A stretch of DNA of 64,000 nucleotides, from the NCBI GenBank assembly GCA_029953675.1, contig JAMWBK010000004.1, positions 2,604,001 through 2,668,000 of the forward strand. The letters are read 5' to 3'. Positions within the stretch are counted from its first letter, which is position 1. Every line of letters starts with the position of its first letter. The translations under genes and the position numbers were made by a program. Under the pieces are notes generated by a model, which made no database searches, was not told where the DNA came from, and saw only the letters and a list, made by a program, of their open reading frames with translations. Positions 1 to 57,696 of this stretch are shown piece after piece. The DNA comes from Rhodosorus marinus CCMP1338. Lineage: Eukaryota; Plantae; Rhodophyta.

Positions 1-71
1 CCATATAGCGACAGGATCCAGAATCAAATTTTCCATCAACTCGGATAGCTACTTTCCGTTTCTAGAACGCC

Positions 72-455
72 TTGAGGCGGTGGACTCGACAACTCTCAAC
101 GAGAATAAAATCCAAGTCTAGAAGTTATCGCTCCAACGTCTCGGCGACGGAACGCTCCTGCTTGTGGTACTGGCAGCCAGTTCTTTGTAGAATCTTCTTC
201 TACGAGAAAGAATTTGATCCCGCAAAGACCTTAAGCCTTGAGCGCACAAGTGCAAGAGCTACGAAGCTTAAGCGCCGACATTCTCAAAGGCTTAAATCCA
301 TGGTGAAGAAGGTTGACAGTGACGTTGAAGAGGGACTGCAAACCTTGCAAGTCGACAGCGTTCAGGAGGAAATCGAAACGCTACATGTCTCGAGGATAAA
401 TGATGTGAGAAGAGGTAGCTTGCAAGGAACAGCAGATGGTGAGTTGGGACGTTAA
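72..455 (+). CDS. Possible 3' part of a hypothetical gene entering from the left edge
   Basis: 127-codon open frame with no ATG start and no recognisable domain; its stop lies 2 nt before the DPH4 ATG. Confidence 0.3.
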
Positions 456-457
456 AT

Positions 458-961
458 ATGGTTGTAAATCATTATGAGGTTTTGGGTGTTGCCATGGACG
501 CCGATGAAACCGCAGTGAAGAAGGCGTTCAGGTCGCTTTCACTGAAGTACCACCCTGACAGGACAAGGTCGAACGATGCGGCGGACTTTCAGAGGCTAAG
601 GACAGCGTATGAAGTCATATCTTCATCTGAACTCCGTCTAGAGTATGACGCTGCACTTTTTCGTAGGTCCCATTCATTAGTTGATGCGAAAACTGGCTCG
701 TTATGGAATGATGATTCCAATGTACTCAACGTTGTGGCATGTTTCGGTGTCTTTGTAGAAGTTCAGCAGAGAATTGTATCCGACGAACTATTCCTGAGTG
801 AGATGGAAGAGACAACCGTGAATAACGCTCGGGCTTGGTGCTCACCATGTCGCTGTGGAGGATCCTATACTGTGACGGATGCGGATTTACGTTTGGGCAT
901 TAATATCGTCGGATGTGATACATGCAGTCTCGCAATTGAACTTATCGATGCGGTGAAGTAG
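458..961 (+). CDS. DPH4: DnaJ plus CSL zinc-finger protein (DPH4/DNAJC24, diphthamide synthesis)
   Basis: J domain (NHYEVLGV...KYHPD) followed by a CSL finger (CRCGGSY...GCDTCSL); intronless, 167 aa. Confidence 0.9.
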
Positions 962-967
962 CGGGGT

Positions 968-2539
968 TCATTCGTAGTCCAGCCGATATCTTTTTCTACG
1001 GTTTTCCCCGGTACCAAATTGCTGAGGGACCCTTAAAGAATCCAGCTTGCCTTCGTCGTGTCGAATATTGTGTTTAAGGCAATGTTCCGGCAAAAGTTCC
1101 AATCTTCTCGTTGGAAATGCTTGTTTCTTGAAATGCTGCATGCTACCCGTAGGAAGCTCGGGCTGCACGCGCTTCTACAAGCTCACACGAATCCCTCGGA
1201 CAGGCATTCTTCAGCTGTCATCGATAGGGATTAGCGGAGAAGAAGAAAATGTCACACGTTGCACAGAGAGTTTTTCAAGCTTGTACGTTTTGATATGTTG
1301 TTGGAATGCGTGCTGATACCGGGGCTTGCTAGAGTTCTCCGCGATCTCTATGCTATGCATCGTTCGTAATTTCTAGATTACCCAAGTAGAACTGGACGAG
1401 ACCTGAACCCGAGCCTGATGAACCTGAGAGCTCTGATTGGAGTCTGCCTGATAGCCCCAAATCGGATTAAACAAGAAGATGCTTGTCTTCGCGACGAAGT
1501 TGTTTTGCCCTGGTCAGGCTTAAAATAGTGCCGACTTTTGAGCCTTTCGAAGGAAGTCCTTCCGACTGAGGTTCACATGCGCGATACCTCTTGTCTGATG
1601 AGGGAAGCTGAGGAATCTCTAGAGCACTTGTGGACAATGCCCAATTTCTTCCCGCTAAAAGGGGAGGCGGTCAATTTTATCTGCTTTCCTTTACAGAGCC
1701 AAATCTGACCCAGAAATGCGTGCTTGACTTATGTCAGCAAGCGGTTCCTAACACCTCTTCGTTCCAAAATCAAAATGATACATCTCTGTGCAAGTTATGC
1801 GTGTGAAATGAGTTTCCGCTGTGTAAGCTGGCGGTTGGAGTAGGCGGAGAACCTCTGTTGATCCATTCTCGGAGATACTTTCAGAGGCAGGTTATTGTGC
1901 ATTCCATTGCCTCTCTATATATTAAACCTCGCACTAAATTCATCACTTCTAGAGTTTGAGTCTTCCGTTGAGGTTTTGCTGAAAACTGATCAAAACTTCA
2001 ACAAGCTTGACGGGTTCGTTTGCCTTGGCTCGGATGTTTGACAAGTCTATCGGTATTGCCACAGTATTGCAGGTCTTCAATTCCACTTATGCTCTCCTAG
2101 CCCCACACCGCATTCAACAGACTTCTCGGTCTTCTATCGAGCATGCTCCGCAGAATGATCGAAACTTCATAACCCAATGAGAGGATTAGCCCTGGTTCAG
2201 GGGTTGGGCAAAAGCTTGTTGATACTCCAACATTGCCACAACGCGCTAGGACTGGATAATAGTACTTCCCGTTAGGAGTTGACCAATCCGTTGCCTCCTC
2301 TCCGCTCTGTTCAGAAGCAGCATCCATCAGTCTTGCATTAACTTCTCCATCAACCTGTGCAATAGTCCCCAAGGGAACATGAGCCAATGGACCATGCTTA
2401 CGATGGCCAAGAAAAATCTTCGAAACTTCAAGCAATTTAGATCCGTTCTCAGCCATCTTATATACTCTTCTTGACGGTTAACTCCATCCACGTCATCGTC
2501 ATTGGCTTTGATTGCAAGCACAGAAATGATATTATCCAA
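968..2539 (-). CDS. Hypothetical multi-exon gene, structure unresolved
   Basis: Several protein-like minus-strand frames (2327-2539, 2097-2456, 968-1168) with plausible GT-AG breaks; converges on the DPH4 stop and lies divergent from THF1 across an AT-rich spacer. No domain recognised. Confidence 0.35.
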
Positions 2540-3284
2540 TCATATCCGTATAAGTATCTCGGTAATAGCTGAAAATACAAAATAAAAACCGTAATCTATC
2601 CACGACGACCTCCCTGCCTTCCTTCCCATTGGTTCATCTTCTCCAAGAAACGCAAAAAAAAGACAACCCTAAGAAACCCCTCACCAACTGAAAACAACCA
2701 AATAAACGGTATAAAAATCTTCAAATACAATTAATATGCAGTATTAACAATAACGTCAACTGAATATAAACTATACGCGGCCCAAAGCTATTAATCCAAA
2801 AAAAAAACGGAACCTGTGCACTCGCGGTTGGATCTTCTCCAATACCCCCCCCCCCTCGCGAAATTTTCCGTCGGACCTCAATATCCTCAATAATATTTAT
2901 CCAAAACTATAATATGGCCGTACGGGTACGAAACTAATCCGAAGGGGAAGGGTTATTTCCAATCAATTTTAGAATGTTACAATATATTTTAAATTTTTGG
3001 TGTTACAGACTGTCCTATTTAATCGTCCTAGGAGGAGATTTTGTGTGGCTGTGGAAGATGCTTCCTGAATGGTTGGTTTCTTGAGGGTTTCTTTATTTTC
3101 CGATCCTTTTTGGGCCTGTCTTGCAGTGGGTGTCGAAGAAAGAATTGCTCTTTTCACAGACGAGAATGTGCGCGGTTTTTGAGGTTGGGATTATATATAT
3201 AGATTTGGTGCAGGGGGGATAGAGTAGGGAGAAGGAAGGGTAACGAGTGAGAGACGGAAGGGCGGGTAGGGGGAAGGTTTGTTC

Positions 3285-3304
3285 GTGTGTGTGTGTGTGT
3301 GTGT
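3285..3304. repeat. (GT)10 microsatellite in the THF1 leader
   Basis: Direct reading of the sequence. Confidence 0.9.
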
Positions 3305-3345
3305 TTGGTGTTGGGTGAAGGTGTTTTTCTTTTTTTGAGTTGAAG

Positions 3346-4424
3346 ATGGTAGGATTTGTGTCTGGGGGTTGGGGACTGAAGTCCTCAGGGGCTTCTGTGA
3401 GGGTAAACAAGAGGCGGACTGTTATGGTTGCACAAGAGATGGAAGCCAAGTCGAAGATGTGGGGGGATGGAACTGATGGATCTGCCTGCGTGCCGGCTGA
3501 TACTGACTTTGCCAAGAAATTTGAGAGCATCAGGGACGCCAAGGTTCCCACTGTAACTGACACGATGGCCAAGTTCAATGAGACGTTCGCTAGACCTGTA
3601 CCGTCCGTTTACAGATCGATTGTAAACGAAATTATTACCCTCAACCATTTGACGACTGTGTGCCCGATGTGGCACTATGACGCTGTTTTTGGCTTCGGGT
3701 TCACGGAAATTTTGGAGAAATATTTCTCCTTTTACCCTAGCGCAGAGGAGAAGGAGAAGCTCTTCTCCTGCATTGTTGGCTCATTGTCTGGATTGGACCT
3801 GCAGAAGATGAGAGATGTAAGTGTTGCTCAAAGCCTGCCCTCAACTTTGGAGATTCTCGATATCCTGTACTCTTCTCTAATGGTCCATCCATGTTTCTTG
3901 TGCTTGTCCAATCAGGATGCCAAAGCGGTGGAAGCGTTCGTCGCTGGGAAGACCGAGGACGAGGTCTTGGCCATGATCGAGTCAGGGAGCAGCGAGGGAC
4001 CTGTTCTCAGTGCTTTTCAGTACATTAAGGAATCCGAATTCTACGACTGGTACTATTCAAGAAACTTTGGCTTCGGCGTAATTTTCATCATTGAAAAACT
4101 TGGAGGGGAGTTGACTGATGCGAACGTCGAAAGATGGGCGAGGGCAATCGGTGCTTCTGAGGTACAGTTGGTTGCTAAACCTACAGTCGAGTGATGAACG
4201 CAACTCGCGCTGACAAGAAAGTGCTGTTTTCTGTGGACTCGTAGGTTAAGGTTAAGGACGAGTTAGGTGTGTATCTCTCGTCCTTGGAAAGATTGAAGCA
4301 GGCTGAGCAGATGTTTGCGGACTTGGCCGCGAGGGAGAAGAAGAAGGCTGCAGACCAACTCGCTGTTGACGCGAAGGCTGCCCTTCAAGAAGCTGAGGAG
4401 GCCAAGAAGGCCGTCGAAAACTAA
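3346..4424 (+). CDS. THF1: Thylakoid formation 1 / Psb29 protein, plastid-targeted
   Basis: Exons 3346-3816, 3916-4161, 4245-4424. MVGFV transit peptide; PTVTDTMAKFNETFARPVPSVYRSIVNEII, YDAVFGFGF and YYSRNFGFG motifs; charged C-terminal helix. Confidence 0.9.
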
Positions 4425-31505: not shown

Positions 31506-31727
31506 GGGTTGGTGAGGTGTGGTGTGGGTTCTAGAGATTTACTGGGCAAGCTTGGATGATTTGTTTAGTTGGAATGGAATGGATGTTTGGATGGAAGCGT
31601 TAGAATGAGCGAAGAGGGTTGGTGAGGTGTGGTGTGGGTTCTAGAGATTTACTGGGCAAGCTTGGATGATTTGTTTAGTTGGAATGGAATGGATGTTTGG
31701 ATGGAAGGGTTAGAATGAGCGAAGAGG
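31506..31727 (+). repeat. 110-bp direct tandem duplication covering the RecQ leader and start codon
   Basis: Copies start at 31506 and 31616; one mismatch seen (C/G). Confidence 0.95.
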
Positions 31728-33673
31728 ACGAGGTATGGGCAATATCAAGTTCTGAGAGCGTTTCAGAGGTGGTGGTGGACGAGGAGGATGATGACGATGA
31801 CAGGGATGGCGTTGAGAGAAGGTTTAGGGAGGCGAAAAGTGAAGTTGAAACGGCGAGGAGGGAGGTTGAGAGGGTGCGAGCGGATTTGAGGCGGGCGGAG
31901 GCCAAGTTGGCGAGAGCAAGGACTGTCCGGGAGCGTCATGTGCGTCGAGCAAACGTTGAGCGGAACAAAATTGCGGTCAGTGGGCTGAACAACTGGAGAT
32001 CATGGGATGGTTCAGTTGATGAAGTGGCCCGTACAGTTTTTGGAGTTACCAGCTTCCGATTCATGCAACGAGAGGCTATAAACGCAGCTATGGAAGGCCA
32101 AGATGTTCTTGCTCTAATGCCAACTGGTAGTGGCAAAAGCTTGATCTATCAGATAACAGCTCTGTCCCTCGGAGGAGTCTCGCTAGTGATCTCGCCGCTC
32201 CTGGCCCTTATTCATGACCAAGTCGAGGATTTGAAACGGAAAGGCGTCACCGCACGAATGCTCTGCTCTGACACACCACGACCGGAAAGCACAGCAACGC
32301 TGAAACTCATCGAGACCTGTGATCTCGCCGCCGGCAAGGGAGCAATCGTTTACCTAACTCCTGAGAAGGTGGTTAAATCAAAAATGCTTATGAACAAGCT
32401 AGAGAAGGCGTATCAAGCTGGCAAGCTTATGAGGTTCATTCTAGACGAGGCCCACTGCTGCTCCCAGTGGGGACACGACTTTCGGACAGACTACTCTCAA
32501 CTTGGAATACTCAAGAACCAGTTTCCTAAGGTCCCAATGATTCTGGTCACCGCCACGGCCTCCAGGAAAGTTCAAGATGATATTGCACAGATTCTTCATA
32601 TCTCAACTCCGATCGTGCTACAGGCCCCCATGGACCGTCCCAACCTTTACTACGAAGTCAGGCACAAGGCGGACAAGGATGAGATTGTAAAGGAAATTGC
32701 CAGCATCGCAAACTCACAAATGTACAAAAGTTCCAGCGGAATAATCTACGTTTTCTCTCGTCGGGACGCTGAAGATTTAGCCTTCGACCTTCGGAGCGTT
32801 TACGACATTCGGTGTAAGGCCTACCACGCGTATCTTGGCCCGGATGAGCGAAAGAGAGTACACGAAGGGTGGGCACGAGGAGACGTAAGGATCGTGGTTG
32901 CTACGATTGCTTTCGGGCTTGGAATCAACAAGCCGGATGTTCGTTTTGTGATCCACCACTGTGTATCGAAGAGCATTGAGAGCTACTACCAGGAGTCTGG
33001 GAGGGCAGGCCGAGACGGAAAGCAAGCACTTTGTGTTCTCTTCTGGAGTCCCACGGACCTGTTTCGGTTGTCAACCATGGTTGCTGGCTCAGCCAATCGT
33101 GCTGCAGCGATAAAGTTGCTGTACGCCATGTGCAGGTACGCCACTGCGAGGACTTGTCGGCGAGAGTTTCTGTTGGAGACTCTGGAAGACGAACGTTCTC
33201 GTAGCGGTGAGACGAACAACGAAACGTGCTGTGACAACTGCAAGAAACCGAGCCAAGCGGATGACGTCACTGAGCTTGCGTACAGTTTGTGGCGGATCGT
33301 CTCAAACGTTGAGGCTCACTCGGGCGGAACAATCACTGATCTTCTCACGGCAAAACAGCTGGTAGATGTGTGGAGTGGAACCGCACCTCCAGCTATCAAG
33401 GCGCGAAACGGTGAGCCTCGTGCGCCGACGTCCATGACCAAGATGGACAGGCTGGCGCTTGTCGTTCAACTCGTTATTGACGGTTTTCTGTCGGAGGTAT
33501 TTCACTATACCCCGTATTCCATTATCTCCTATATCCAGACGGAGCCACTTGAGAACGCCCGCAATGGAATGATCCTCATGACGCGCCCCCAAGGCAATGG
33601 GGTTCAAGAGCAAGGACGCAGACGTACGAAGCAGAAACTGAAGAGATCGAGGATAGAATCAGATCCCGTATAG
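31715..33673 (+). CDS. RECQL: RecQ helicase, RECQ1/RECQL-type
   Basis: Intronless. MPTGSGKS, LDEAHCCSQWGHDFR, YYQESGRAGRDG, Zn site CRR...CCDNC, winged-helix hairpin FHYTPYSIISY. Confidence 0.92.
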   Translation: MSEEDEVWAISSSESVSEVVVDEEDDDDDRDGVERRFREAKSEVETARREVERVRADLRRAEAKLARARTVRERHVRRANVERNKIAVSGLNNWRSWDGSVDEVARTVFGVTSFRFMQREAINAAMEGQDVLALMPTGSGKSLIYQITALSLGGVSLVISPLLALIHDQVEDLKRKGVTARMLCSDTPRPESTATLKLIETCDLAAGKGAIVYLTPEKVVKSKMLMNKLEKAYQAGKLMRFILDEAHCCSQWGHDFRTDYSQLGILKNQFPKVPMILVTATASRKVQDDIAQILHISTPIVLQAPMDRPNLYYEVRHKADKDEIVKEIASIANSQMYKSSSGIIYVFSRRDAEDLAFDLRSVYDIRCKAYHAYLGPDERKRVHEGWARGDVRIVVATIAFGLGINKPDVRFVIHHCVSKSIESYYQESGRAGRDGKQALCVLFWSPTDLFRLSTMVAGSANRAAAIKLLYAMCRYATARTCRREFLLETLEDERSRSGETNNETCCDNCKKPSQADDVTELAYSLWRIVSNVEAHSGGTITDLLTAKQLVDVWSGTAPPAIKARNGEPRAPTSMTKMDRLALVVQLVIDGFLSEVFHYTPYSIISYIQTEPLENARNGMILMTRPQGNGVQEQGRRRTKQKLKRSRIESDPV

Positions 33674-39221: not shown

Positions 39222-41627
39222 ATGTCAAGCTTCGAGGATGAGAATTCTATCTCCCTGAGCCTTTCTCTTGATGATTCTAAGCAAGGTCTCGAAGAAAGTC
39301 ATGTTCTGCAGACTGTGCAGGACCCGGAATCCGTTTCGATGGCGCAGGATGATGATACCTTAGAGCTGGATGAGGCGGACGATATTGATGCAGATAAGGA
39401 TGTCGCTGACGATGAGGCTATCATTGATCCATTTCTCATGGAAAAGGAGGATATTCCAGATGACGGATCAGGAGCAACTCCTTCGAAAGAAGCGATGTAC
39501 TCACCCGGGGAGTACTTCAAAAGCCGATCTGCTAGGCTCGAGCAGCCAGACTTCAACGAGGATGCTTTCTTCCCCCTCGAAAAGCCCAAGTTTGAATTCG
39601 ATTCACCTGCAAAACCTGTCAGAGAGGAGGAGTCACTTATCCTGCCGATAACGCGGCGGGATAGTCTGCTCGTGCCGAAGTGGTTGATGAGTAACGGGGC
39701 GATTCTCAGAACGATGACTAAGGGAGCATCTCAAACTTTTACCGTGCAAAACATATCCCAAGCCACTGTGACCATTTCTTTGAAGCTTAAGGGGGTAGAC
39801 GATGCCATGAACGGCATGGGAGTATTCCCGAAAGAAGCTGCAATTGAACCAGGAGCCGTGATAAATTTCACAGTTAGCATCCCAAAGGATGCGAAAATTG
39901 AATCACCTCTAGCGGGTGCACTACTGTTGGAAGCTCTAACCAGTGGAGAAACGAAAACGTTCAGCTTCAAGCTTGCCGCACTCTCGAGTGCCGCGGAGCC
40001 TCAACAATTGACAGGAGCTGTGTCTGATACTCCGTCGCTGACAAGAAGTGATGTTGAGACTGGAGAGGTCCTGGTGGATGTGGGAGGGAGCAGTGCTAGT
40101 GCTTCTCAAGCGACCAACAATAGAGGCGCCTCGCTAGATGAGTCTCTAGAGGATTCACGGGTGCAGAATGCAGTCTCTCAATCAATGGAATCTGATGAAT
40201 TGGATATCCAACCAAACGCAGTGGTTTTCGGGGGAGTACAAGACTGCGGGTGTGCGAGGATGCTTTACTTAAGGAACCCAACAGCTCTGTCCAGGATGAT
40301 CGATCTGAAGGTCACCGGGTCCGACACTGACAGGAGCATGTTTAGACTCGATGAGAGCGAAGTTTTAATCAAACGGAGCTCCGAGCACTCGGTTTTCGTG
40401 CGTGCCATTCCGCCAAGCACCGGAGCTGGCCCGGCGCAGGCTTCGGCTTACCTCACTGTTCTGGAGAAAGGAACTCCTCTGGGATCGATACTCCTGGACG
40501 CGTATTTCGGGCGCTCGATGCTTTCTTTTGAAAGCATCTCCAAGAGTAGTAAGAAGCAGAAGTCTTTCCATCTGAATTTATTCAATTCTGGTGTGAGGTG
40601 CGCATACGTGATACCAATGCTCTTGGGAAACGCGACAGTGGAGTCGTCGGACAGAGTAGCAACTAAAGGGTTTGTGCTCCTTAGCAAGCAACGCGAAAGG
40701 ATTCTCGTTGAGTTCAAGGACTTTGTCCCAAAAGAACTAACTTTACACTGGGGTGATGAGATCTGCAGAAGGAGAAGGAGAGCTAGTCGTAGTATGCGGA
40801 CAGAGGCCGATCGATTTGATGCTGTCCTACACGGAGAAGATACCTTTGATGACGTAGAGGGTGAATCCAGGGTTCCTCGCGCGGAAGATGAGATGACCTT
40901 CGTGAAACAGAAGCAAGTTTTATTGCTACCGCTGCCTCAGGAGGATGAGGAGGACCCGCTGCCAGAATTGAACTTGTTGAATCTTAGTGGGAGGGTGCAC
41001 AGATGTCTTGACATTGCGGAAACCGGCCTGGGTTTTCCGAGGACAGGGTTTGGGGAATCGTCTGGCGGTGCTGTTTGGATTATGAACAAATCTGCCTCAA
41101 CCATTAATTGGGACATTGTGTTCTGCCCTCCTTTGATACTGGCAGCCAGTACAAAAGGAACAATTCGAAGCGGCCGAGGAAAGCCACTGTCATTCATTTT
41201 TAGACCCGACACTACCGACGTTGAGTCGGTAATGGCAGAACTTGGAGACGTTGTCCTACGTTGCGGGAGGGAGCGGTACACAATTCCTTGCAGAATAGTA
41301 TCAGACTGGGAGGTTGGTCAAACTAGGGGCAGACCAGAGCTTACATTCGGGGTGAACAGGCTCATATTCTCGGGCCAAGCATCGCATATAAAAGTACAAC
41401 TCTGCAACAGAAGTACTAGAGCGATAACAGCGGCTGTGGCCGAGGTTCCAGCTCCATACTCAGTTTCTGTGAAGATTCTGCGGTTGCCTCCTAGGTCTTA
41501 TGTAAGAATTCCGGTTACCTGTTCCCGTTCAGAAGTCATGGGTTTAGGATCCGTGCACAACCTGGCCGTCATTGGCAGCGCCGGCTGCTCTACGTCTGTC
41601 AAGCTCGTTCATCTGGATGATACCTAG
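39222..41627 (+). CDS. CEP192: CEP192/SPD-2-like protein (acidic N-terminus plus tandem ASH/PapD-like domains)
   Basis: 801-aa intronless ORF. Ordered motifs match the human CEP192 C-terminal region as recalled: VVFGGV..YLRN, LDAYFGRS, NSGVRCAYV, WGDEICRR, FPRTGFGES, VQLCNRS..PYSV..RSYVRIPV. Confidence 0.72.
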   Translation: MSSFEDENSISLSLSLDDSKQGLEESHVLQTVQDPESVSMAQDDDTLELDEADDIDADKDVADDEAIIDPFLMEKEDIPDDGSGATPSKEAMYSPGEYFKSRSARLEQPDFNEDAFFPLEKPKFEFDSPAKPVREEESLILPITRRDSLLVPKWLMSNGAILRTMTKGASQTFTVQNISQATVTISLKLKGVDDAMNGMGVFPKEAAIEPGAVINFTVSIPKDAKIESPLAGALLLEALTSGETKTFSFKLAALSSAAEPQQLTGAVSDTPSLTRSDVETGEVLVDVGGSSASASQATNNRGASLDESLEDSRVQNAVSQSMESDELDIQPNAVVFGGVQDCGCARMLYLRNPTALSRMIDLKVTGSDTDRSMFRLDESEVLIKRSSEHSVFVRAIPPSTGAGPAQASAYLTVLEKGTPLGSILLDAYFGRSMLSFESISKSSKKQKSFHLNLFNSGVRCAYVIPMLLGNATVESSDRVATKGFVLLSKQRERILVEFKDFVPKELTLHWGDEICRRRRRASRSMRTEADRFDAVLHGEDTFDDVEGESRVPRAEDEMTFVKQKQVLLLPLPQEDEEDPLPELNLLNLSGRVHRCLDIAETGLGFPRTGFGESSGGAVWIMNKSASTINWDIVFCPPLILAASTKGTIRSGRGKPLSFIFRPDTTDVESVMAELGDVVLRCGRERYTIPCRIVSDWEVGQTRGRPELTFGVNRLIFSGQASHIKVQLCNRSTRAITAAVAEVPAPYSVSVKILRLPPRSYVRIPVTCSRSEVMGLGSVHNLAVIGSAGCSTSVKLVHLDDT

Positions 41628-41762: not shown

Positions 41763-42455
41763 TTAAAGACTTGCGAAGTCCACGCTCTTCAAAATCTGCA
41801 ACATCGAAGATAAAAACCGTCCATCGACCTCGTATGCCACCCAGACCAGGGCTCGGAGGACATCCCGAGTGCGCTTTAAAGTCGATTCTTGGGAAACTGA
41901 TGATTGCGTTGAGTATAGATCGCTGGCGAGGTACGAGCTACTGATTCCTCTCGATCCGAGCACGATCTGTCCGACTAATCTCGCTCTATGAAGATGGTAC
42001 GAGGACGTAATTACCTGGACGTAGCGTATGTTTCGCCGCTTCAGCTCGTCAACCAAGGTCGAATAATTTGTCAGCGTATCCACGGCACGCCTGTCCACAA
42101 CAACTAGGTCCCTTACACCGTCAAACAGTGTATCGTTCAATCTGAAGCTCCCGGAGGACACAAAGGTCAGTCGCGGACGGCTCTTCAACAGAGAGACCGC
42201 GAAGGATTCCCTCGACGGCTCCCCTCCAAGCACAAGGTTCGCGTCCACATCCTCCCCAATTCTTCTCCCCTCATGTGCCCTGTACCAAGCCCGGCACAAT
42301 CCGAAACACAGTCTCAAAGCTCCAACAGAGAAAAAAAGGCCTACGAAGAAGACCAAGAGGACAGCCAATTCCATCGAAGCCTTCGACCGATTCCGCATGT
42401 TCCAGCACGGGTCAGTGCATCTGCGATTCCATATGACTCCGAACGTTTCTTCCAA
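41763..42455 (-). CDS. DUF218/YdcF-family membrane-anchored protein
   Basis: N-terminal hydrophobic helix; DTLTNY, VITSSYHLHRAR and RDVLRAL motifs typical of cyanobacterial-type DUF218. Confidence 0.72.
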   Translation of the reverse strand: MEETFGVIWNRRCTDPCWNMRNRSKASMELAVLLVFFVGLFFSVGALRLCFGLCRAWYRAHEGRRIGEDVDANLVLGGEPSRESFAVSLLKSRPRLTFVSSGSFRLNDTLFDGVRDLVVVDRRAVDTLTNYSTLVDELKRRNIRYVQVITSSYHLHRARLVGQIVLGSRGISSSYLASDLYSTQSSVSQESTLKRTRDVLRALVWVAYEVDGRFLSSMLQILKSVDFASL

Positions 42456-42851: not shown

Positions 42852-44537
42852 TTAGTCGCGTAGTGCGTGAGCTAGTACGTCTTGAACCTCATGTCGCTCA
42901 TCCACTCCCAAATCTTCTTCTCCACCCCTGACAGTCCTTGCGTTTTCGAAAAGTTCAGATAGACGTCTCGAGGCTTCTTGAATACCACGTCCGGATATGA
43001 ATCCTCCGTTTTCGATCTTGCAGAGGGAGTCCACCAGCGTGATTCGGACTAGTCTTGGGATACCTGTCCCGCATTTTCTAACCATTTCGACTATTGTTCT
43101 GCGCAGAGAGCTGGTATTGTTGCGGTCTGTATGGGCGCGGACCAGGGGTAGGTACGTCTGAAAGTTCGGGTTTTTCGTCTCCGCAACAAGGTTTTCTGCT
43201 GTCTTGAGATGCTCCGTACTACCGCTGTTTGCATATGCCGCGATGAGCAGGTTGCGATGAACCATGGTCGGATCAAAACCATACTTCCTTGCAAGCGACC
43301 GATAGACTTCTGAAGCTTGCTCCGCTTCTCCAGCGGCAGCTAGAGTTTGCATTAACATGCCAGCAGTGATCTCGCTCGGTTTAACACCCTTTTCTAGCAT
43401 TTCCTGAACGATGCGCTCCACTTCGCTTGTATCCCCTGCCTTGGACGGACCAATGAGCAGACAGTTGTAGAGGGAAACGTTTGGTTCGATTCCGGATTTC
43501 AACATTTTCTCGAAAACTTCACGTGCAGACTGATATTCCCCAGCCCTACTATGAGCGACGACCAGAGTACTGAAAGAGTATTGAGTGGGCTCAATACCGA
43601 AGATTTCTAGTAGTTCACGATGGCGCTTCAAAGCATACTTCGGTTTTCTCCCGCGCGTGTACGCACTCACAACCCTGTTTAGACACCGTTCATCGGGCCT
43701 GATGTTCAGCTCTGACATTCGTTTCAAAACCCGCTCTGCTGCCTCGTAATCCGCGTCCCTGTCCATCAGCTTCAGAAGCATGTCGAAGTGGACACATGTT
43801 AATTGCCGACCTTCCTTGAACATCCTGCCCAAAGTGCGCTGGAGACCACTCCTGTTCCTAGCCTGCAAGTACGCATAGGCTAGATAGTGGAACTCAGAAT
43901 CGAGGACACTCTTCCGTTCTGCCAACAATTTCCCCAGGAGCAACTCTGACGCACGATAGTCTCCTTTTCGAGAAGAAGAAAACAGGGCTTCCCTCAACGC
44001 TCTAAGTTTCGTCGATCCTTGCGGACGACTTCTCTTCGTTTTCACTCTCTGCTTTAGCTTCACACCATCCTCTGGGTGTCCTCGAAGGTTACCTTGGATA
44101 CTCTTCTTACATGCGGATGCCTCCTTCCATAGATCTCTTGCCTCACCTAGTCTGCCTTGTCCTTCCAACCGATTGCACACAAGCCGAACCGTTTCATGCC
44201 CTATATCCACCTTTCCGTTCAAGGATTGCTGCACTACACGCCTAGCTTCTTCGACCTTTTCATTTCCATTGTTCAGCAGCTCGACGATCAAGAACTTTGC
44301 GACATTCTTATCCAGCGCGATCCCTTGCCTCTCGAGAAATCTCGTCACGCCAACTCCACCCCGCAACGCTTTCCTAATAATCCGAGAGCCTTCAAGATTC
44401 ATATCTACAGTGAAGAAGGTAGACCAAAGTACAGCTGGCTGAGATTCCTTCCCGAACCTTCGCCGTTCGAGCAGTAGCCTGCTTCTTCCCGACCCAAGCG
44501 CTTCTACCCCAATGCTTTCAAGACCATAACTAGCCAA
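42852..44537 (-). CDS. Pentatricopeptide repeat (PPR) protein, N-terminus unresolved
   Basis: Tandem 35-aa repeats (PDERCLNRVVSAY, PTQYSFSTLVVAH, PNVSLYNCLLIG, PSEITAGMLMQT, PTMVHRNLLIAAY). Confidence 0.87.
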   Translation of the reverse strand: MASYGLESIGVEALGSGRSRLLLERRRFGKESQPAVLWSTFFTVDMNLEGSRIIRKALRGGVGVTRFLERQGIALDKNVAKFLIVELLNNGNEKVEEARRVVQQSLNGKVDIGHETVRLVCNRLEGQGRLGEARDLWKEASACKKSIQGNLRGHPEDGVKLKQRVKTKRSRPQGSTKLRALREALFSSSRKGDYRASELLLGKLLAERKSVLDSEFHYLAYAYLQARNRSGLQRTLGRMFKEGRQLTCVHFDMLLKLMDRDADYEAAERVLKRMSELNIRPDERCLNRVVSAYTRGRKPKYALKRHRELLEIFGIEPTQYSFSTLVVAHSRAGEYQSAREVFEKMLKSGIEPNVSLYNCLLIGPSKAGDTSEVERIVQEMLEKGVKPSEITAGMLMQTLAAAGEAEQASEVYRSLARKYGFDPTMVHRNLLIAAYANSGSTEHLKTAENLVAETKNPNFQTYLPLVRAHTDRNNTSSLRRTIVEMVRKCGTGIPRLVRITLVDSLCKIENGGFISGRGIQEASRRLSELFENARTVRGGEEDLGVDERHEVQDVLAHALRD

Positions 44538-50423: not shown

Positions 50424-53283
50424 TTAGATCGTTACTCTGACTCCTTTTTTTGGCTGCTGCCTAGTCTGTTCAGTTTTTCGTTTAAAGCGCTCGGACAGAG
50501 AACCACCAGTGGCCCGCGCTGGGGTTGCAATTTCATTTTCTGCCGGCGCGTGATCCTCTTGGTGTACCCTCTTGATAAGGGCGGTCATGTCCGCTCCTTC
50601 AGTGTGGTTTTGAGGTGCAAGGCTGTGCGGCTTCCTTTCATCCGCTTCTTCTGCTGCCTGGACCCTAGCCTGGATGGAGAGCCTCATGCGTTCCCTCAAG
50701 TTATCAAGATGATAGTGTTCTGCCAACCGCAGTGAAAGTTTGAGGGCCCAAGCTTCCTGCAACGTGTTAGTGAGCTCCAGAGCGCGGCTGGCATTCTTCA
50801 ACTTGCACGCCTCTTCCACAGCCTTGAGCACCGCTTTCTCTGTGTCCATTTTCTGCTTGCCGAACTGCTCGAGAAGGTTATCATCCTCTTCATAGTCTCG
50901 ATGAAAGCTCTCAGACGCCTCCCTCTTTTCAAGAGCTCCTTTCAAGATTCTCAACCTTCTACGTTGGTCGAAAAGGGCTCGCCGCGTCTTGGAGGGTTCA
51001 ACTGTTACTGGGTCAAACTGAACCCTGGTGACCGGCGACCGGGGAACTACCGATGGATATCTGCACGGGAAAAAAGATCAACGCGTGTCAACGCGACGCT
51101 AGAATGACACTATGGTCGAGACAACAGATTGAAGTATCCAAAACTCACTTTTCGTCGCCGAAGAGGTTGACTCCAATGGCAGTTTGGGAATCCACTGTAA
51201 CAGGCCAAAACGCCGTAGCATCAAGTTTCTCATTGACCTTCTCAGCGAGCAAAATCCATTTCTTCTGTTTCTCCTCGAGTAGGTGGAAAGTACTTCTCGA
51301 GTCCATTACGACCAGATCATTTTCGACCTGTGAAAGACCAATCCACTGCAGCGAAGCTTTCGGGGAGATTCCAGGGGGCGAATGGTGAATTCTGGTGACG
51401 TGTCCGTCGGAATCAACTGTGTAGACGCTGGTATATACTTCACCAGAGAACTGACTCTGGGAGACAGTGCAAAGCCGATCGCGACTCGCGCAGGCGCTGA
51501 TGACCGAACCTTCAATGGATGAAACGTCGGTTTCCATCCCGCTCAAGTTGAACACGCGGAGCAGCTGTTTCGAGGTTCCAACTACGACAAAGTGACCACC
51601 TAGTGCAACTGCTTCAGCGCGCTCAACCTGTCGGAGCCGAGCAGACCACTCCGCGTTGGTTGTCCATGATTCGAAAGGTTTGTAGACTACCATGCTCGGG
51701 TGCTCTTCCTTTGCGTGACATGCGAATACTGCGCCATGTTCATCCATAGTACCTAGAGAAAGATCTAGAAAAGACAGATTCTCGGGTTGGAAACAATCGC
51801 TTAACATCCTAATCATGCTAGGAAAAGGTCACTTACCGAAGTGATCGATGAAGCGGAATGGCCTTTTGCCTTGATCATTAAAATCCACTTCTATGGATTG
51901 ATGAGTTTCTTCATTGAACACGACGATGACGCCTACTCGATTCCAGCACATGATCCTCTTTCTGGATCGTGAGGTCAGTGGTGTTGCCGAAGGCATGAAC
52001 GGAGAGACTGGTACAATTTCGTGACCTGTGAGCTGGCGCTTGTGGGTCTTTCGAGGGCCCATGTATTCTCTCGATGCGTCTTCCAGAATAGCCTCCTCGT
52101 TGAGACTGTAAGGTGATAGAGACCCATCATCGACAACAGAACCCTCCGAGACATGTGTGTCCTCTTTCTTCCTCAGTCGCTTTCTGCGAGAAGGCGTCTT
52201 CACCTCCTCATCCTCGCTATCCACTGCTACGTTGGCATGATGCGTCACCCTTCCATCCTTCCCCTGCGCATCATCTGCCAACACATTGTATGCCTTGGGC
52301 ATGTGCTCTGCCACGGCGTCGTGGAACATACAAGCCTGCCCTTGGTCGTCTAATGCAATGAATGAGTTGCTTGTGGGGTTCCAACGTACGAATTGGATAG
52401 GGAGATCAGCACTCCACCTATCCAGTATCGTCCTCTTCCCAGCATCTATCAACATGCACTGACCGGCGGAGTCCCCGCAAAGCACGTACTCTCCGCTTCC
52501 GCTCCAATCTACCGATTTGACCGTGGCGCCGATGAACCGACCAGTGTTAACATCTCCAGAGCCCAAGGCTTGCCAGCTGTTCCTCGCAATAAACTGAATT
52601 CCCCCCTCTGTGCCGACGACGAAGGAATTTCCATTGGGGTGCCAACTTGCGCTTGTCGCCTTCTTTCCGCCGAGCTCCACTGCAGTAACAAATTCCTGGT
52701 TCCCAATTGACCAAACGCAAACACCACCACGTTCTCCCACAGAAATTATGAAGTCCCCTAATGGATCATACGCTAGGGCGTCGACCGCGTCTTCCTGGGT
52801 CTCTCCTCCCGAACCACGGAAAATCGTATGATTCCGGATGTTCGTCCTGTTGATCATCTTGATTACACCGGGCTCCTCACCAGCAGCGATGAAGGCGTTT
52901 CCCGTGGGCGAAAAATCCAGGGCTCTAACTGCTCCGCTGAATCGCACCATAAATGGTACTGCCTGGATGCCTGATTCGTCCGAATCCCAGTCGATGGAAG
53001 TTTTTTGCGGCAGGGAGAAGAGCCTCACCCTTCCTTCGTCATCGCCAGTCGCAAACCCCCAACCATTCGGAGCAATTGCTATGGAATTGATACTCTCAAT
53101 CTGTTCATCTAAAATTCTCGCCACACGTTTGGGTTTGTGAACCGTCTTCGCAACCTTCGCCCCATCATGCGCGAGAACAAACGCATCAGTACCGCAACTC
53201 AGCGCCCACGAACCATCCGGCATGAACGCAGCCCGACACCTCCCACCCGCATGTACAGGCAACAAATTCAGTTTCTTGCTCAT
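50424..53283 (-). CDS. WDHD1: CTF4/AND-1 (WDHD1) replisome adaptor
   Basis: Exons 53283-51837, about 51764-51149, 51060-50424. N-terminal WD40, SepB region PFMPSATP...RIMCWNRVG...IEVDF, YKPFESWTTNAEWS, helical C-terminus. Confidence 0.9.
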
Positions 53284-54254: not shown

Positions 54255-56764
54255 CTATGACAAGCCCACGACTCTTCCAGTTTCCGGATCTAGATCGATT
54301 TCGTAGTAGCAGGGTCTGGTTGGGAGACCGGGTATGGTTGGCATTTCGCCGACGAGCGGATACACGAACCCTGCGGCACGAATACCATTCAGAAAGTTGT
54401 GGCAAGCAACATCTGTAGTACTAGATTAAAAACCACAAATCTCACCTGCTCCAGCACTCAGGCGGATGTCTCTCACAGGTATAACGAAATCCTTGGGGGC
54501 ACCTTTCAATTTTGGGTCCGCGGAAAAACTGTATTGCGTCTTTGCCATGCAAACGGGCAACTTGCCATATCCTAGCTTGTTGTACTCCTCAATCTTGGCC
54601 TTCGCCTCATCCTGAAATGAAACAATTGACAGATCACGAACTAGGGCTCAGGGCTAGTTAAAAGGGTCCGAGCTTCGTTGTTGAATTGCCAATCCATTAC
54701 CGACAGTTCTACATCCCCCCCTCCATAGAAATCACAGGATAATTTCCGGATTTTGTCCTCTAGACTCATTTCGTCAGGATACAGCAGTTTAAAATCTGCC
54801 TTGGCCTCGCAAGCTCGTACAACCGCCTCAGCTGAGGTTACCAATCACAAAAGCCAGAAGCCGGGTGTCAGGTAAGGCCTCAACACATCCTCTGAGGAAG
54901 TATTAAGGTGTTTTTACTCACCCAATGCCTTCGCACCTGCGCCTCCTTTAGCAAAATGTTCGGAAGGAACAGCGTCAAATGCGCCAGCAGCCTTTGACAG
55001 TCGAACCACAGTTTCAATCTCGCGATCTGTATCATTCTTGAAACGATTGATACATACAACTACAGGAACGCCAAACCCGATGGTGTTCTTGATATGCCTT
55101 TCCAGGTTCTAGGGATTTCATCCAAAAAAAAAACACCACACGGACAAGTCAACACTTATGTCCGACTGATCCGACACTGATGGAAGTCTTTAAGAAAAAG
55201 GCGACTTACTGCAAAACCATTTTCAACCATCTCAACGTCCTCCTTTGAATACTCCACGGGCAGTGGGGTACCTGCGCTAACTGCTGGGCCTCCCTGTCAT
55301 GCCAGAAATTCAGTCGAAGTGTTATCCAATGTTTGCTGAATTGGAAGGGACGGAACGAACTTCACTTACTCCATGAGACTTCAGTGCTCTGACCGTCGCG
55401 ACCAGAATAGCAGCGCTCGGCTTCATGCCGCTTGACCTAGAAGCAAGGCACAAGATCATCAGGATGATTGGTTTATTGATTTCTGCACAAAGGTTCAATT
55501 GTTCTGTTTTTCCTTTCCTACCTGCACTTGATGTTGCAGAACTTTTCCAGCCCTATGTCAGCTCCGAAACCAGCCTCGGTAAACACGTATCCTTCTGGTC
55601 CAACAATTTTCATGCCGATTTGGTCTGCGACAACTGAGGAGTTCCCATGTGCGATGTTTGCGAACGGGCCTAGAGTGATGCGGAGCAAAGTCAAGAAACA
55701 GGATCAGTTCTCATTCGGTTATGTTTCAGTTCTCTAGATGCCCTGAGATGTGTACCTGCATGTACGAATACAGGAGTACCCTCCAAAGTTTGCATGAGAT
55801 TCGGCATAATTGCGTCCTTCATCATTACAGTGAGAGCTCCACCGACGCCAAGATCGTCCGCGGTAACCGGATCTCCCCGACTCGAAAAACCCACAATTAT
55901 CGCGCCAAGACGCTCTCTCATGTCCTTGATCCCTGTGGTAAGCGCTAAAATTGCCATGATTTCCGAGGCAACGGTGATGTCAAAACCCGTATCCCGCATT
56001 CTACCCTTCTCCGTGGGGTTCAAGCCGACAGTGATCTTCCTCAGGAACCGATCGTTCACATCCAAAACGCGCTGCAGTTTGATACTTGATGGATCGATGT
56101 CCAACCGAACAAACGCGCTGATCTCAGCTTCGGTCAGCTCGTTGGGGTCTGTCTTATCGATACCGAGCTTTTTCAGTCTCCGAAACATTACAGGAGCGAA
56201 TCTTCGTGATCCATCTGCAGCGGGGGGACACAGTCTTCTAAACAGCGCTTGATCGCTCTGTGTGGACTCATGGAACATCCTCGTTTCTAGAGCAGCACAC
56301 AATAGGTTGTGGGCTGCACTGATCGCGTGTATATCTCCAGTCAAGTGCAGATTGAACTCTTCCATTGGGATGACTTGAGAAAAACCACCACCAGCTGCGC
56401 CGCCTTTGATCCCAAATGTCGGCCCCTGAGAAGGCTGCCTAACGCAAGTAAACACATTCTTCCCGAGATGTGCACCCATAGCCTGACTAACGCCAACCGT
56501 AGTCGTACTTTTACCTTCTCCAAGCGGAGTTGGAGATATACCGCCGATCACAATCAGCTTGCCATCTTCCCTATCCGCCAGCTCGTCCAGCACAGAAAGA
56601 TTCACTTTGGCCTTGTACTTGCCATAGAGCTCTAGAACATCCTCACTCAAGCCAATCGCACTAGCTATCGTCCTCACATCGATCACATCAGCAGCCTGCG
56701 CAATCTCAATATCCGCCGGTACCGGATCCAACGCCGTCAGCTTCTTGTACGTTGAATACCCCAT
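54255..56764 (-). CDS. fhs: Formate-tetrahydrofolate ligase (FTHFS)
   Basis: Eight exons: 56764-55756, 55669-55522, 55436-55370, 55293-55210, 55108-54922, 54831-54701, 54611-54446, 54370-54255. [52 protein letters not shown]. Confidence 0.96.
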
Positions 56765-57696
56765 TTTGCAGAGATATCTCACAATAGTACGCCTTGAAAC
56801 TTCCTTCAATAACCAGTAGTATTGACTATATTAACAAATACAACCAAAAAAATTCTGCACAAGCTCTTCCCCTCCCTCTAAACCCTCCTAACCTCCACGA
56901 GTGCTTAGCAAGCCCCAACCAATGCAATCCATCCAAGAAACGGATCCCTTCAAAACGATCTCACATCCACTTACCTATCAAACATAAAATACCCAAAAAA
57001 CTTCCCACTCCAGAAACCCAAGGCTTCCTACCCAAAATCATTAAGGGGTGGACACTTGTCAATATCTTTCTAAGCAATTCGTTCATATACCCATCTTGAT
57101 ATCCGGTAAAAATCATTTATTCATATTTTATAAATATTTAGTGGTAATATATTTTTAAATACATGGGGGATAGTTGAATCATAATTCGTTCGCGTCTCTT
57201 TTGGCGATTTACAGAGGGGGCTACAAGGATGAGAATATCCAGTGTTGTATGGAAGGTCGAAAAAAATGCACACTTTCCCTTTTTTGTTTTAAGTATTCAA
57301 TATCTAATATACCATTTATCAATCACCGCGTGTCCGAAAAATCAGGATTCTAACCAATAGGTAGGCGAGAATATGCGAGCTGAAAGTCACCGCGATTAAT
57401 CCAATGAAAATATACTAAGTGTCCTCTAAATTGATTTTATCCAATGGTGTGTTGAATTGGATCGGCAGTTGAAGCTCCGCCGAGATTTCCTTTTTTTGGC
57501 TGTTTCCCGAGCGTGGAGATGTTGGTAGGAGAGAAAGCAGTTAGTATTTGAAGCGGGTGAGAGTCTGTGTTAGGACTGTTTTCGGTTAGACGGGGTTTCA
57601 GGTTTGGGAGATAAGGGACGTGAATCTTTTCTTTCGGACAATTGGATTTATTAGGAACCTCGTTTGTTGTTTTTTCTTTGTGTTTGGTTTGGTAAG

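Follow-up and report, generated by a model that had tools for sequence, protein, structure and literature searches.

The window analysed here, a 64,000-nt stretch of contig JAMWBK010000004.1 of the red alga Rhodosorus marinus CCMP1338, contains at positions 39222-41627 (+) an uninterrupted open reading frame (ORF) with an ATG start and a length of 801 aa, delimited in the ORF list exactly as an earlier note on this DNA had given it. With a probability of about 0.7, its product is a shortened relative of the CEP192/SPD-2 centrosome scaffold proteins, most likely located at the spindle-pole organiser of the alga. Within this reading, it is very probable, on the basis of sequence comparison, that the ORF encodes a genuine and highly diverged member of the family by homology, and a scaffold function at the spindle pole, argued by analogy, is given even odds.

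Profile evidence for an Spd-2 domain

The CEP192/SPD-2 family is defined by the Spd-2 domain (SP2D), i.e. two ASH domains held in an "extended cradle" by two motifs (Hu et al. 2025, PMC11922060), of which motif 1, LxGYGG, lies in the last strand of the first ASH domain and motif 2, GDExxR, lies in a bridge helix emerging from the second (PMC11922060). The corresponding pair in the Rhodosorus protein comprises an ASH4-like domain (aa 325-431, 40194..40514, +), located by hhalign and the 7PTB alignment, and an ASH5-like domain (aa 432-584, 40515..40973, +), located by hhalign and Cep192_D5. Motif 2 is intact (GDEICR, aa 511-516, 40752-40769, +; aligned to human GDEISR) and invariant in all four family members, which are the proteins of three Rhodosorus strains and the relative P0003 described below. 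Next come RRRR and an acidic stretch, which occupy the place of the "bridge" insertion, and R520, at the +4 position, stands where the family has a second conserved Arg. The counterpart of motif 1 is degenerate: LDAYFG at the end of the ASH4-like domain (aa 425-430, 40494-40511, +), aligned to LSGYGG of 7PTB, still has the Leu, the contact Tyr and the final Gly. Residues Y428, G511, D512, E513, R516 and R520, which correspond to cradle-stabilising positions, are conserved.

Profiles were needed for comparison with the PDB because a single-sequence phmmer search with the window protein returned no match. A CEP192 construct ranked first in all three PDB searches (177,635 sequences): 7PTB, the human CEP192 SP2D, with the profile of the SP2D region (E=0.018, 17.7 bits), 9FH8 (E=0.046), and 6FVI, human CEP192 ASH7, with the full-length profile (E=0.13), in this last case followed by CFAP65 (E=0.32). 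The top sequence matches were human and honeybee SP2D and human ASH7, and the SP2D searches returned no ASH-family protein besides CEP192. Scores were low throughout because animal CEP192 orthologs are barely more alike, as phmmer calibration gave 27 bits for human versus honeybee SP2D and 12.8 bits (E=0.61) for human versus fly ASH1.

The earlier note had set six segments of the protein against the C-terminus of human CEP192, and five of these pairs were recovered in the PDB alignments. In the 7PTB alignment these were VVFGGVQ/LAWGGVP with MLYLRN/KLALRN, ILLDAYFGRS/IPLSGYGGTS (human side IPLSGYGGTSNL), LFNSGVRCAYV/VRNTGSRAAFV and LHWGDEICRR/LFGGDEISRQ, and in the 6FVI alignment FPRTGFGESS..IMNKS stood opposite ITFPTTEPGETS..LENHG. 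The sixth pair (KVQLCNRS../KVNLRNNS..) lies in ASH8, where the stretch of aa 718-768 gives the best Pfam match of the protein (Cep192_D8, E=1.3e-5).

For profile-profile comparison, an animal SP2D profile was made from human, honeybee and fly fragments taken from the PDB alignments and then aligned. Against this profile, hhalign gave the red-algal SP2D region a probability of 97.35% (P=1.5e-11, score 79.8, 184 columns), with each of the two motifs paired to its counterpart; multiplying the P-value by the 177,635 PDB sequences among which the animal fragments had been selected still leaves ~3e-6. The null scores were ~17 for the reversed profile, 13.4±2.6 for column shuffles, and 22.5±6.2 (maximum 45.6) for shuffles of 8-column blocks in which the motifs were retained. 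With both motifs and the poly-Arg tail removed, the probability was still 95.9% (P=6e-9), which rules out an artefact of the motifs or of the poly-Arg tail alone.

When the two halves were compared separately, the first ASH domain matched its animal counterpart at 93% (P=3.3e-7) and the second at 83% (P=9e-6), and the crossed halves gave 0.1-0.6%. Other red-algal ASH domains reached at most 2.2% against either animal half, and all cross-domain and other-ASH comparisons, including that between the two animal halves, remained at or below 3.7%. Each half of the SP2D matches only its own counterpart, and generic ASH similarity was thereby ruled out. Because of this domain specificity and of the null and deletion controls, the similarity is considered to be that of orthologous domains and not a generic Ig resemblance, and on profile evidence the SP2D of the Rhodosorus protein is homologous to that of animals.

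Domain layout, Pfam matches and the relative P0003

Judged by sequence matching, the five ASH domains of the protein match human ASH3, ASH4, ASH5, ASH7 and ASH8 in order, so that the architecture is an acidic N-terminus with no structure predicted in a low-confidence AlphaFold2 model, followed by a colinear ASH array ending in ASH8. The N-terminal acidic, Ser-rich region (aa 1-84, 39222..39473, +; 35% D+E, net charge -26) is probably disordered, as it gave no Pfam match and showed no secondary structure in the same model. The following segment (aa 85-150, 39474..39671, +) is the most constrained part of the protein and contains YSPGEYFKSRSARLEQPDF (aa 93-111, nt 39498-39554), a linear motif rich in aromatic residues that is also present in P0003, in which residues 5-29 align to this region with 52% identity. 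The motif had no match among PDB chains, a comparison which would cover any deposited CEP192 peptide of at least 20 residues, and it is a candidate partner-docking motif.

The first ASH/Ig-like domain is ASH3-like (aa 151-256, 39672..39989, +; Cep192_D3), is preceded by a conserved VPKWL, shows beta strands in the low-confidence AlphaFold2 model, and aligns with P0003 residues 366-494. A Ser-rich and acidic linker (aa 257-324, 39990..40193, +), the least conserved segment with 62-74% identity between strains, separates it from the SP2D. Downstream of the SP2D are the ASH7-like domain (aa 585-702, 40974..41327, +; Cep192_D7 and 6FVI) and the C-terminal ASH8-like domain (aa 703-801, 41328..41624, +; Cep192_D8) with a conserved LRLPPRSYVRIPV.

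Scanning of the whole protein with Pfam models returned matches that were almost all to Cep192 models, in order Cep192_D3 (aa 164-223, E=4.5e-4), D5 (aa 432-528, E=4.8e-3), D7 (aa 596-648, E=0.19) and D8. With segments scanned singly, Cep192_D5 (E=1.3e-4), D7 (E=0.015) and D8 were the top matches. The best scores over the whole-protein and single-segment scans were 20.7 bits for D3, 22.0 for D5 and 15.6 for D7, each against a gathering cut-off of 27, and 25.8 for D8 against 33.5. On the ASH3-like segment alone Cep192_D3 was second (E=3.5e-3), slightly behind IalB, an unrelated family whose match is due to chance. Cep192_D8 was the best Pfam match in all four family members (E=1.3e-5, 6.1e-6, 6.3e-4 and 1.2e-4, the last from the whole-protein scan of P0003), and one R. 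marinus ortholog carries a precomputed weak Cep192_D8 match though it is named "Uncharacterized protein". No Hydin, ASPM or CFAP model matched the window protein at E≤10 in the Pfam scans, and HYDIN/CFAP65-type models appeared, weakly, at the ASH6 and ASH7 positions of P0003 alone. The best match is CEP192 and not another ASH family in the Pfam models, the three PDB searches and hhalign (97%) alike, in line with the family assignment of the earlier note.

Among 1.84 billion representative proteins, searched exhaustively with HMMER, P0003 (E=2.4e-8) was the sole additional relative. This fragment of 1049 aa comes from a cultured eukaryote (JGI sample 3300016811, contig Ga0186080_100413; gene at positions 1-3150 of the contig, L002 here), is 28% identical to the window protein, and itself has no relative above 50% identity among the same representatives. 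The best-scoring stretch between the two proteins is the ASH8-like domain (45% identity over 44 aa). The SP2D motifs of P0003 are near-canonical (MWGYGG and GDEILR; WGDEILRRRRRR), and by sequence this protein is closer to canonical CEP192 than the Rhodosorus protein is. When its domains were scanned singly, D4 (E=3.7e-5, over the full model) and D6 (E=1.3e-7; 32.2 bits, cut-off 35) were top matches, and D5 and D7 each took second place, after an unrelated family or a generic Ig family, the latter only just ahead of D7. P0003 appears to retain all eight ASH positions, and according to the alignment the Rhodosorus protein is without the two N-terminal ASH domains and the ASH6 that P0003 has. Combining the two proteins, ASH positions 3-8 each find the position-matched Cep192 model as best or near-best. 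On its contig, P0003 is encoded convergently with a Met-tRNA synthetase of organelle type that has a presequence-like extension at its N-terminus.

Several observations weigh against a CEP192-type spindle-pole protein. In motif 1 (LDAYFG), A and F stand in the place of two of the three glycines, and the spacing from the motif-1 Tyr to the motif-2 Asp is 84 aa, compared with 78 in P0003, 111 in human and 113 in bee. The window protein contains no canonical S-[S/T]-P Polo-box docking site. No Pfam match reaches the gathering cut-off in the window protein or P0003, every Cep192 match lying below a curated score that is operational and not biological, and the ASH4-like segment of the window protein scanned alone gave no Cep192 match. 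Against the animal profile, the window protein alone reached 71% (P=3.6e-5) and a Rhodosorus-only profile 85%, so that the strong hhalign result depends on P0003. The AlphaFold2 predictions had a mean predicted local distance difference test score (pLDDT) of 28.7 for the full length (3 sequences), and of 40.2 with a predicted template modelling score of 0.40 for the SP2D (4 sequences). In addition, the HMMER search returned no homolog in other red algae or other named organisms.

With only four sequences available, AlphaFold2 confidence was too low for a structural comparison. The SP2D model, unreliable at pLDDT 40.2, has a strand over motif 1 and a helix starting at WGDEICRRRR, as the crystal structures predict. 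Foldseek comparison of the AlphaFold2 model with the PDB gave no match at E≤0.001 and only generic beta-sandwiches, a result which is meaningless because the models are unusable.

These generic sandwiches, together with Pfam scores that are all below the gathering cut-offs, with CFAP65/HYDIN-type models about equal to Cep192_D7 at the ASH7 position, and with IalB ahead of Cep192_D3 on the first domain, would fit a generic multi-Ig (PapD/ASH-like) protein unrelated to CEP192, in which the motifs arose by convergence or chance and the sub-threshold Pfam matches reflect shared beta-sandwich features. Such a protein would however not be expected to give position-specific, colinear matches at six domain positions in two sequences only 28% identical, nor an SP2D of which each half recognises its own counterpart alone, with a signal that survives motif removal and with CEP192 SP2D structures as top PDB matches and no competing family nearby. 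Hydin, CFAP65, ASPM and MSP proteins have in common with the Rhodosorus protein the Ig-like beta-sandwich unit but are without the SP2D motif pair and bridge, and none of them is the best match here. Hydin and CFAP65 are, moreover, ciliary proteins, not expected in an organism without cilia. The generic multi-Ig explanation is disfavoured and regarded as very improbable.

Gene, locus and selection

The gene is a complete, intronless CEP192/SPD-2-like coding sequence of 801 aa and stop (39222..41627, +), according to the ORF list, transcript colinearity and a ratio of nonsynonymous to synonymous substitution rates (dN/dS) of ~0.32. Word-indexed homolog searches, whose index does not reach relatives as remote as P0003, returned as close relatives only two R. 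marinus transcriptome orthologs, from MMETSP0011 (UniProt A0A7S2ZL11) and MMETSP0315, which are both 800 aa long and over their full length 83% and 82% identical to the window protein, respectively. End-to-end colinearity with these proteins indicates that the gene is intronless and expressed.

The window is part of a 3.19-Mb contig of assembly GCA_029953675.1, and ordinary nuclear genes surround the locus in it, i.e. those for a RecQ helicase, a pentatricopeptide repeat (PPR) protein, Ctf4/WDHD1 and formate-tetrahydrofolate ligase. Both transcriptome contigs share the gene order of the CEP192-like gene, a ~205-aa ORF on the opposite strand, and the PPR gene. From the size of the contig, the nuclear neighbours and the gene order common to the other strains it follows that this is a genuine nuclear red-algal gene, and contamination was ruled out on the same three grounds. 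The host is accordingly the red alga Rhodosorus, as the earlier note had presumed a red alga, and R. marinus is a stylonematophycean species.

Codon-level comparison of the three Rhodosorus strains gave dN/dS values of 0.32-0.36 at synonymous divergence (dS) of 0.26-0.35. These values indicate purifying selection on a genuine, expressed gene whose protein evolves fast. Constraint is strongest in aa 85-150 (dN/dS 0.05-0.19), followed by the ASH3-like domain and the second SP2D ASH domain, and weakest in the linker of aa 257-324 (dN/dS 0.42-0.53) and the ASH8-like domain. The three strains, all labelled Rhodosorus marinus, have amino-acid identities of 76-83% at the locus (17-24% divergence), and the two MMETSP strains are further from each other than either is from the genome strain, which suggests cryptic species within R. 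marinus.

Upstream, the locus is flanked by an intact RecQ-type helicase gene (31679-33673, +) with DEAD, Helicase_C and RecQ_Zn_bind domains, and on the other side by the PPR-repeat protein gene (42852-44537, -). Directly downstream and convergent with the CEP192-like gene lies an ORF of ~205-230 aa (41763-42455, -), which is syntenic in all three Rhodosorus strains (positions 2807-3418 of transcriptome contig L003 and 2710-3345 of L004), has a hydrophobic N-terminus, and gives as its sole Pfam match a sub-threshold DUF218 (E=0.0017).

The Ctf4/WDHD1/Mcl1 gene (50424-53283, -) is broken into three ORFs, of which 51829-53283 contains WD40 and the start of Mcl1_mid, 51145-51816 the remaining Mcl1_mid, and 50424-50954 Ctf4_C. 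The first two are in the same frame with a gap of 12 nt, and the in-frame TGA overlaps a canonical GTAAGT, which is followed by TTTTCCTAG; the interruption looks like a very short spliceosomal intron rather than the mark of a pseudogene. The formate-tetrahydrofolate ligase ORF (55691-56809, -; E=8e-124) covers only model positions 2-270 of 556, and the remainder of the gene must be in another exon or frame downstream. No tRNA genes or Rfam elements were found in the whole 64-kb window. The transcriptome contigs L003 (5609 nt), L004 (3392 nt) and L002 (5073 nt) each contain two or three genes on opposite strands, which suggests either highly compact genomes whose transcripts overlap or carry-over of genomic DNA into the libraries.

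Relation to known centrosome scaffolds and distribution

The Rhodosorus protein resembles animal CEP192/Spd-2/SPD-2 in having an N-terminal region that is probably disordered, followed by a C-terminal ASH array with an SP2D, in the intact GDExxR and the motif-1 Tyr that is kept, and in its ASH8-like C-terminus. A reduced number of ASH domains is also met in ecdysozoan proteins, and worm SPD-2, with ~820 aa, is of similar size. In contrast to human CEP192 with its eight ASH domains, the Rhodosorus protein has five, and it differs from the animal proteins in motif 1 (LDAYFG versus LxGYGG) and in motif spacing (84 versus 111-113 aa), with sequence identity at the detection limit. No docking elements for Aurora-A, PLK1 or PLK4 were recognisable in the Rhodosorus protein. 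The host differs as well in being without centrioles: red algae by definition have no cilia, centrioles or basal bodies and form polar rings instead (PMC6492006).

The best functional precedent is Dictyostelium, where a CEP192 member likewise belongs to a centrosome without centrioles (PMC8467581, PMC8534566). Dictyostelium Cep192 is a core component of this acentriolar centrosome, forming the outer core layer of the nucleus-associated body (PMC8467581, PMC8534566), and it recruits corona components, CDK5RAP2 and gamma-tubulin complexes (PMC8534566). In a sampling of Amorphea only, ASH4, ASH5 and ASH8 were the sole domains clearly assignable in it (Hu et al., PMC11922060), and these are also the clearest signals here, leaving aside ASH6, which was found in P0003 only. 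The two systems, compared by published description, differ in that Dictyostelium belongs to Amorphea and the red alga to Archaeplastida, and in that a layered nucleus-associated body stands against a polar ring in ultrastructure.

A scaffold role, as put forward in the earlier note, is proposed as a reasonable hypothesis because of these Dictyostelium data and because the fly SP2D promotes scaffold assembly (PMC11922060). By analogy with animals and with the acentriolar Dictyostelium centrosome, the red-algal protein would sit at the polar ring or nucleus-associated organelle, where its SP2D may promote self-assembly of the scaffold and its N-terminal region may dock partners, e.g. mitotic kinases and gamma-tubulin-complex tethers. 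The cradle fold, self-assembly, partners and location are those predicted from the known family members, and the protein is regarded as a candidate structural component of spindle poles in red algae.

The fast evolution of the gene, with 17-24% amino-acid divergence at a dS of 0.26-0.35 and dN/dS of 0.32, could also be that of a true CEP192 descendant which no longer acts at a microtubule-organising centre, and which either was kept after centriole loss for another ASH-type role, e.g. as a membrane-traffic or Golgi-associated scaffold, or is slowly decaying. The loss of ASH1, ASH2 and ASH6 equivalents relative to P0003, the degenerate motif 1 and the missing Polo-box docking motif agree with such a fate, as does the lack of detected homologs in other red algae, which would make the gene dispensable in most of the phylum. 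On the other hand, the SP2D interface residues and the C-terminal ASH8 are still constrained, CEP192 is fast-evolving also in animals, where it is essential, the Dictyostelium family member works in a centrosome without centrioles, and no signal for any alternative function was found. Repurposing or decay is hence considered unlikely, and a role at the spindle-pole organiser is preferred.

According to the literature, CEP192/SPD-2 occurs in animals and Amoebozoa only (Carvalho-Santos et al., Pitzen et al.; PMC3144413, PMC8467581), and the statement of the earlier note that the family is known from animals and Dictyostelium agrees with these papers and with the supplement of PMC10499817, a 2023 phyletic profile in which the ancestral state of CEP192 in the last eukaryotic common ancestor is marked "?". 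One choanoflagellate and one chytrid were added in 2025 (PMC11922060 supplement), and a chytrid study of the same year did not detect CEP192 in chytrids. The table of Graf et al. 2021 lists no CEP192 in Arabidopsis, Trypanosoma, SAR (stramenopiles, alveolates and Rhizaria) or yeasts (PMC8534566), and our literature search found no paper linking CEP192 to red algae. Two metagenome pattern scans gave 209 and 246 pattern matches, of which none was confirmed. With the Rhodosorus protein, a known family gains a new and highly divergent member from a supergroup in which it was not expected.

This patchy distribution, with three Rhodosorus strains and P0003 but no other red alga or archaeplastid in the exhaustive HMMER search, and the absence of introns from the gene would also fit a horizontal transfer, by which the Rhodosorus lineage received a CEP192 member from an amorphean or some other source; the gene would then be uninformative on the ancestral eukaryote. 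The milder form of this explanation, a contaminant, is excluded by the nuclear contig and conserved gene order; the very large divergence from every sampled CEP192 (17.7 bits to human) speaks against a recent transfer, and the fast evolutionary rate alone can explain non-detection elsewhere. Transfer is altogether improbable, and a phylogeny would be needed to dismiss an ancient one.

Vertical descent would carry a wider consequence: a red-algal member sets the minimum age of the family at the split of Amorphea and Diaphoretickes, unless it was transferred horizontally. It is tentatively proposed, at less than even odds, that CEP192/SPD-2 is older than this split, which would probably place it already in the last eukaryotic common ancestor, and that the red-algal organiser is derived from a centrosome. 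If so, CEP192 would be missing elsewhere through loss or extreme divergence, and not because it originated within Amorphea. The Rhodosorus protein also shows how far the family can diverge, which bears on the many published reports of centrosomal proteins missing from a lineage. The source organism of P0003 would show the breadth of the non-amorphean distribution of CEP192.

For red algae, the organiser descriptions found were ultrastructural only, and the protein is the first named scaffold candidate for their spindle-pole organiser, which opens the question of whether the acentriolar organisers of different supergroups are homologous remnants of the centrosome. If the proposed descent is true, the polar ring or nucleus-associated organelle would be the ancestral centrosome in a form that has no centrioles but continues to rely on an SP2D scaffold of the CEP192 type.

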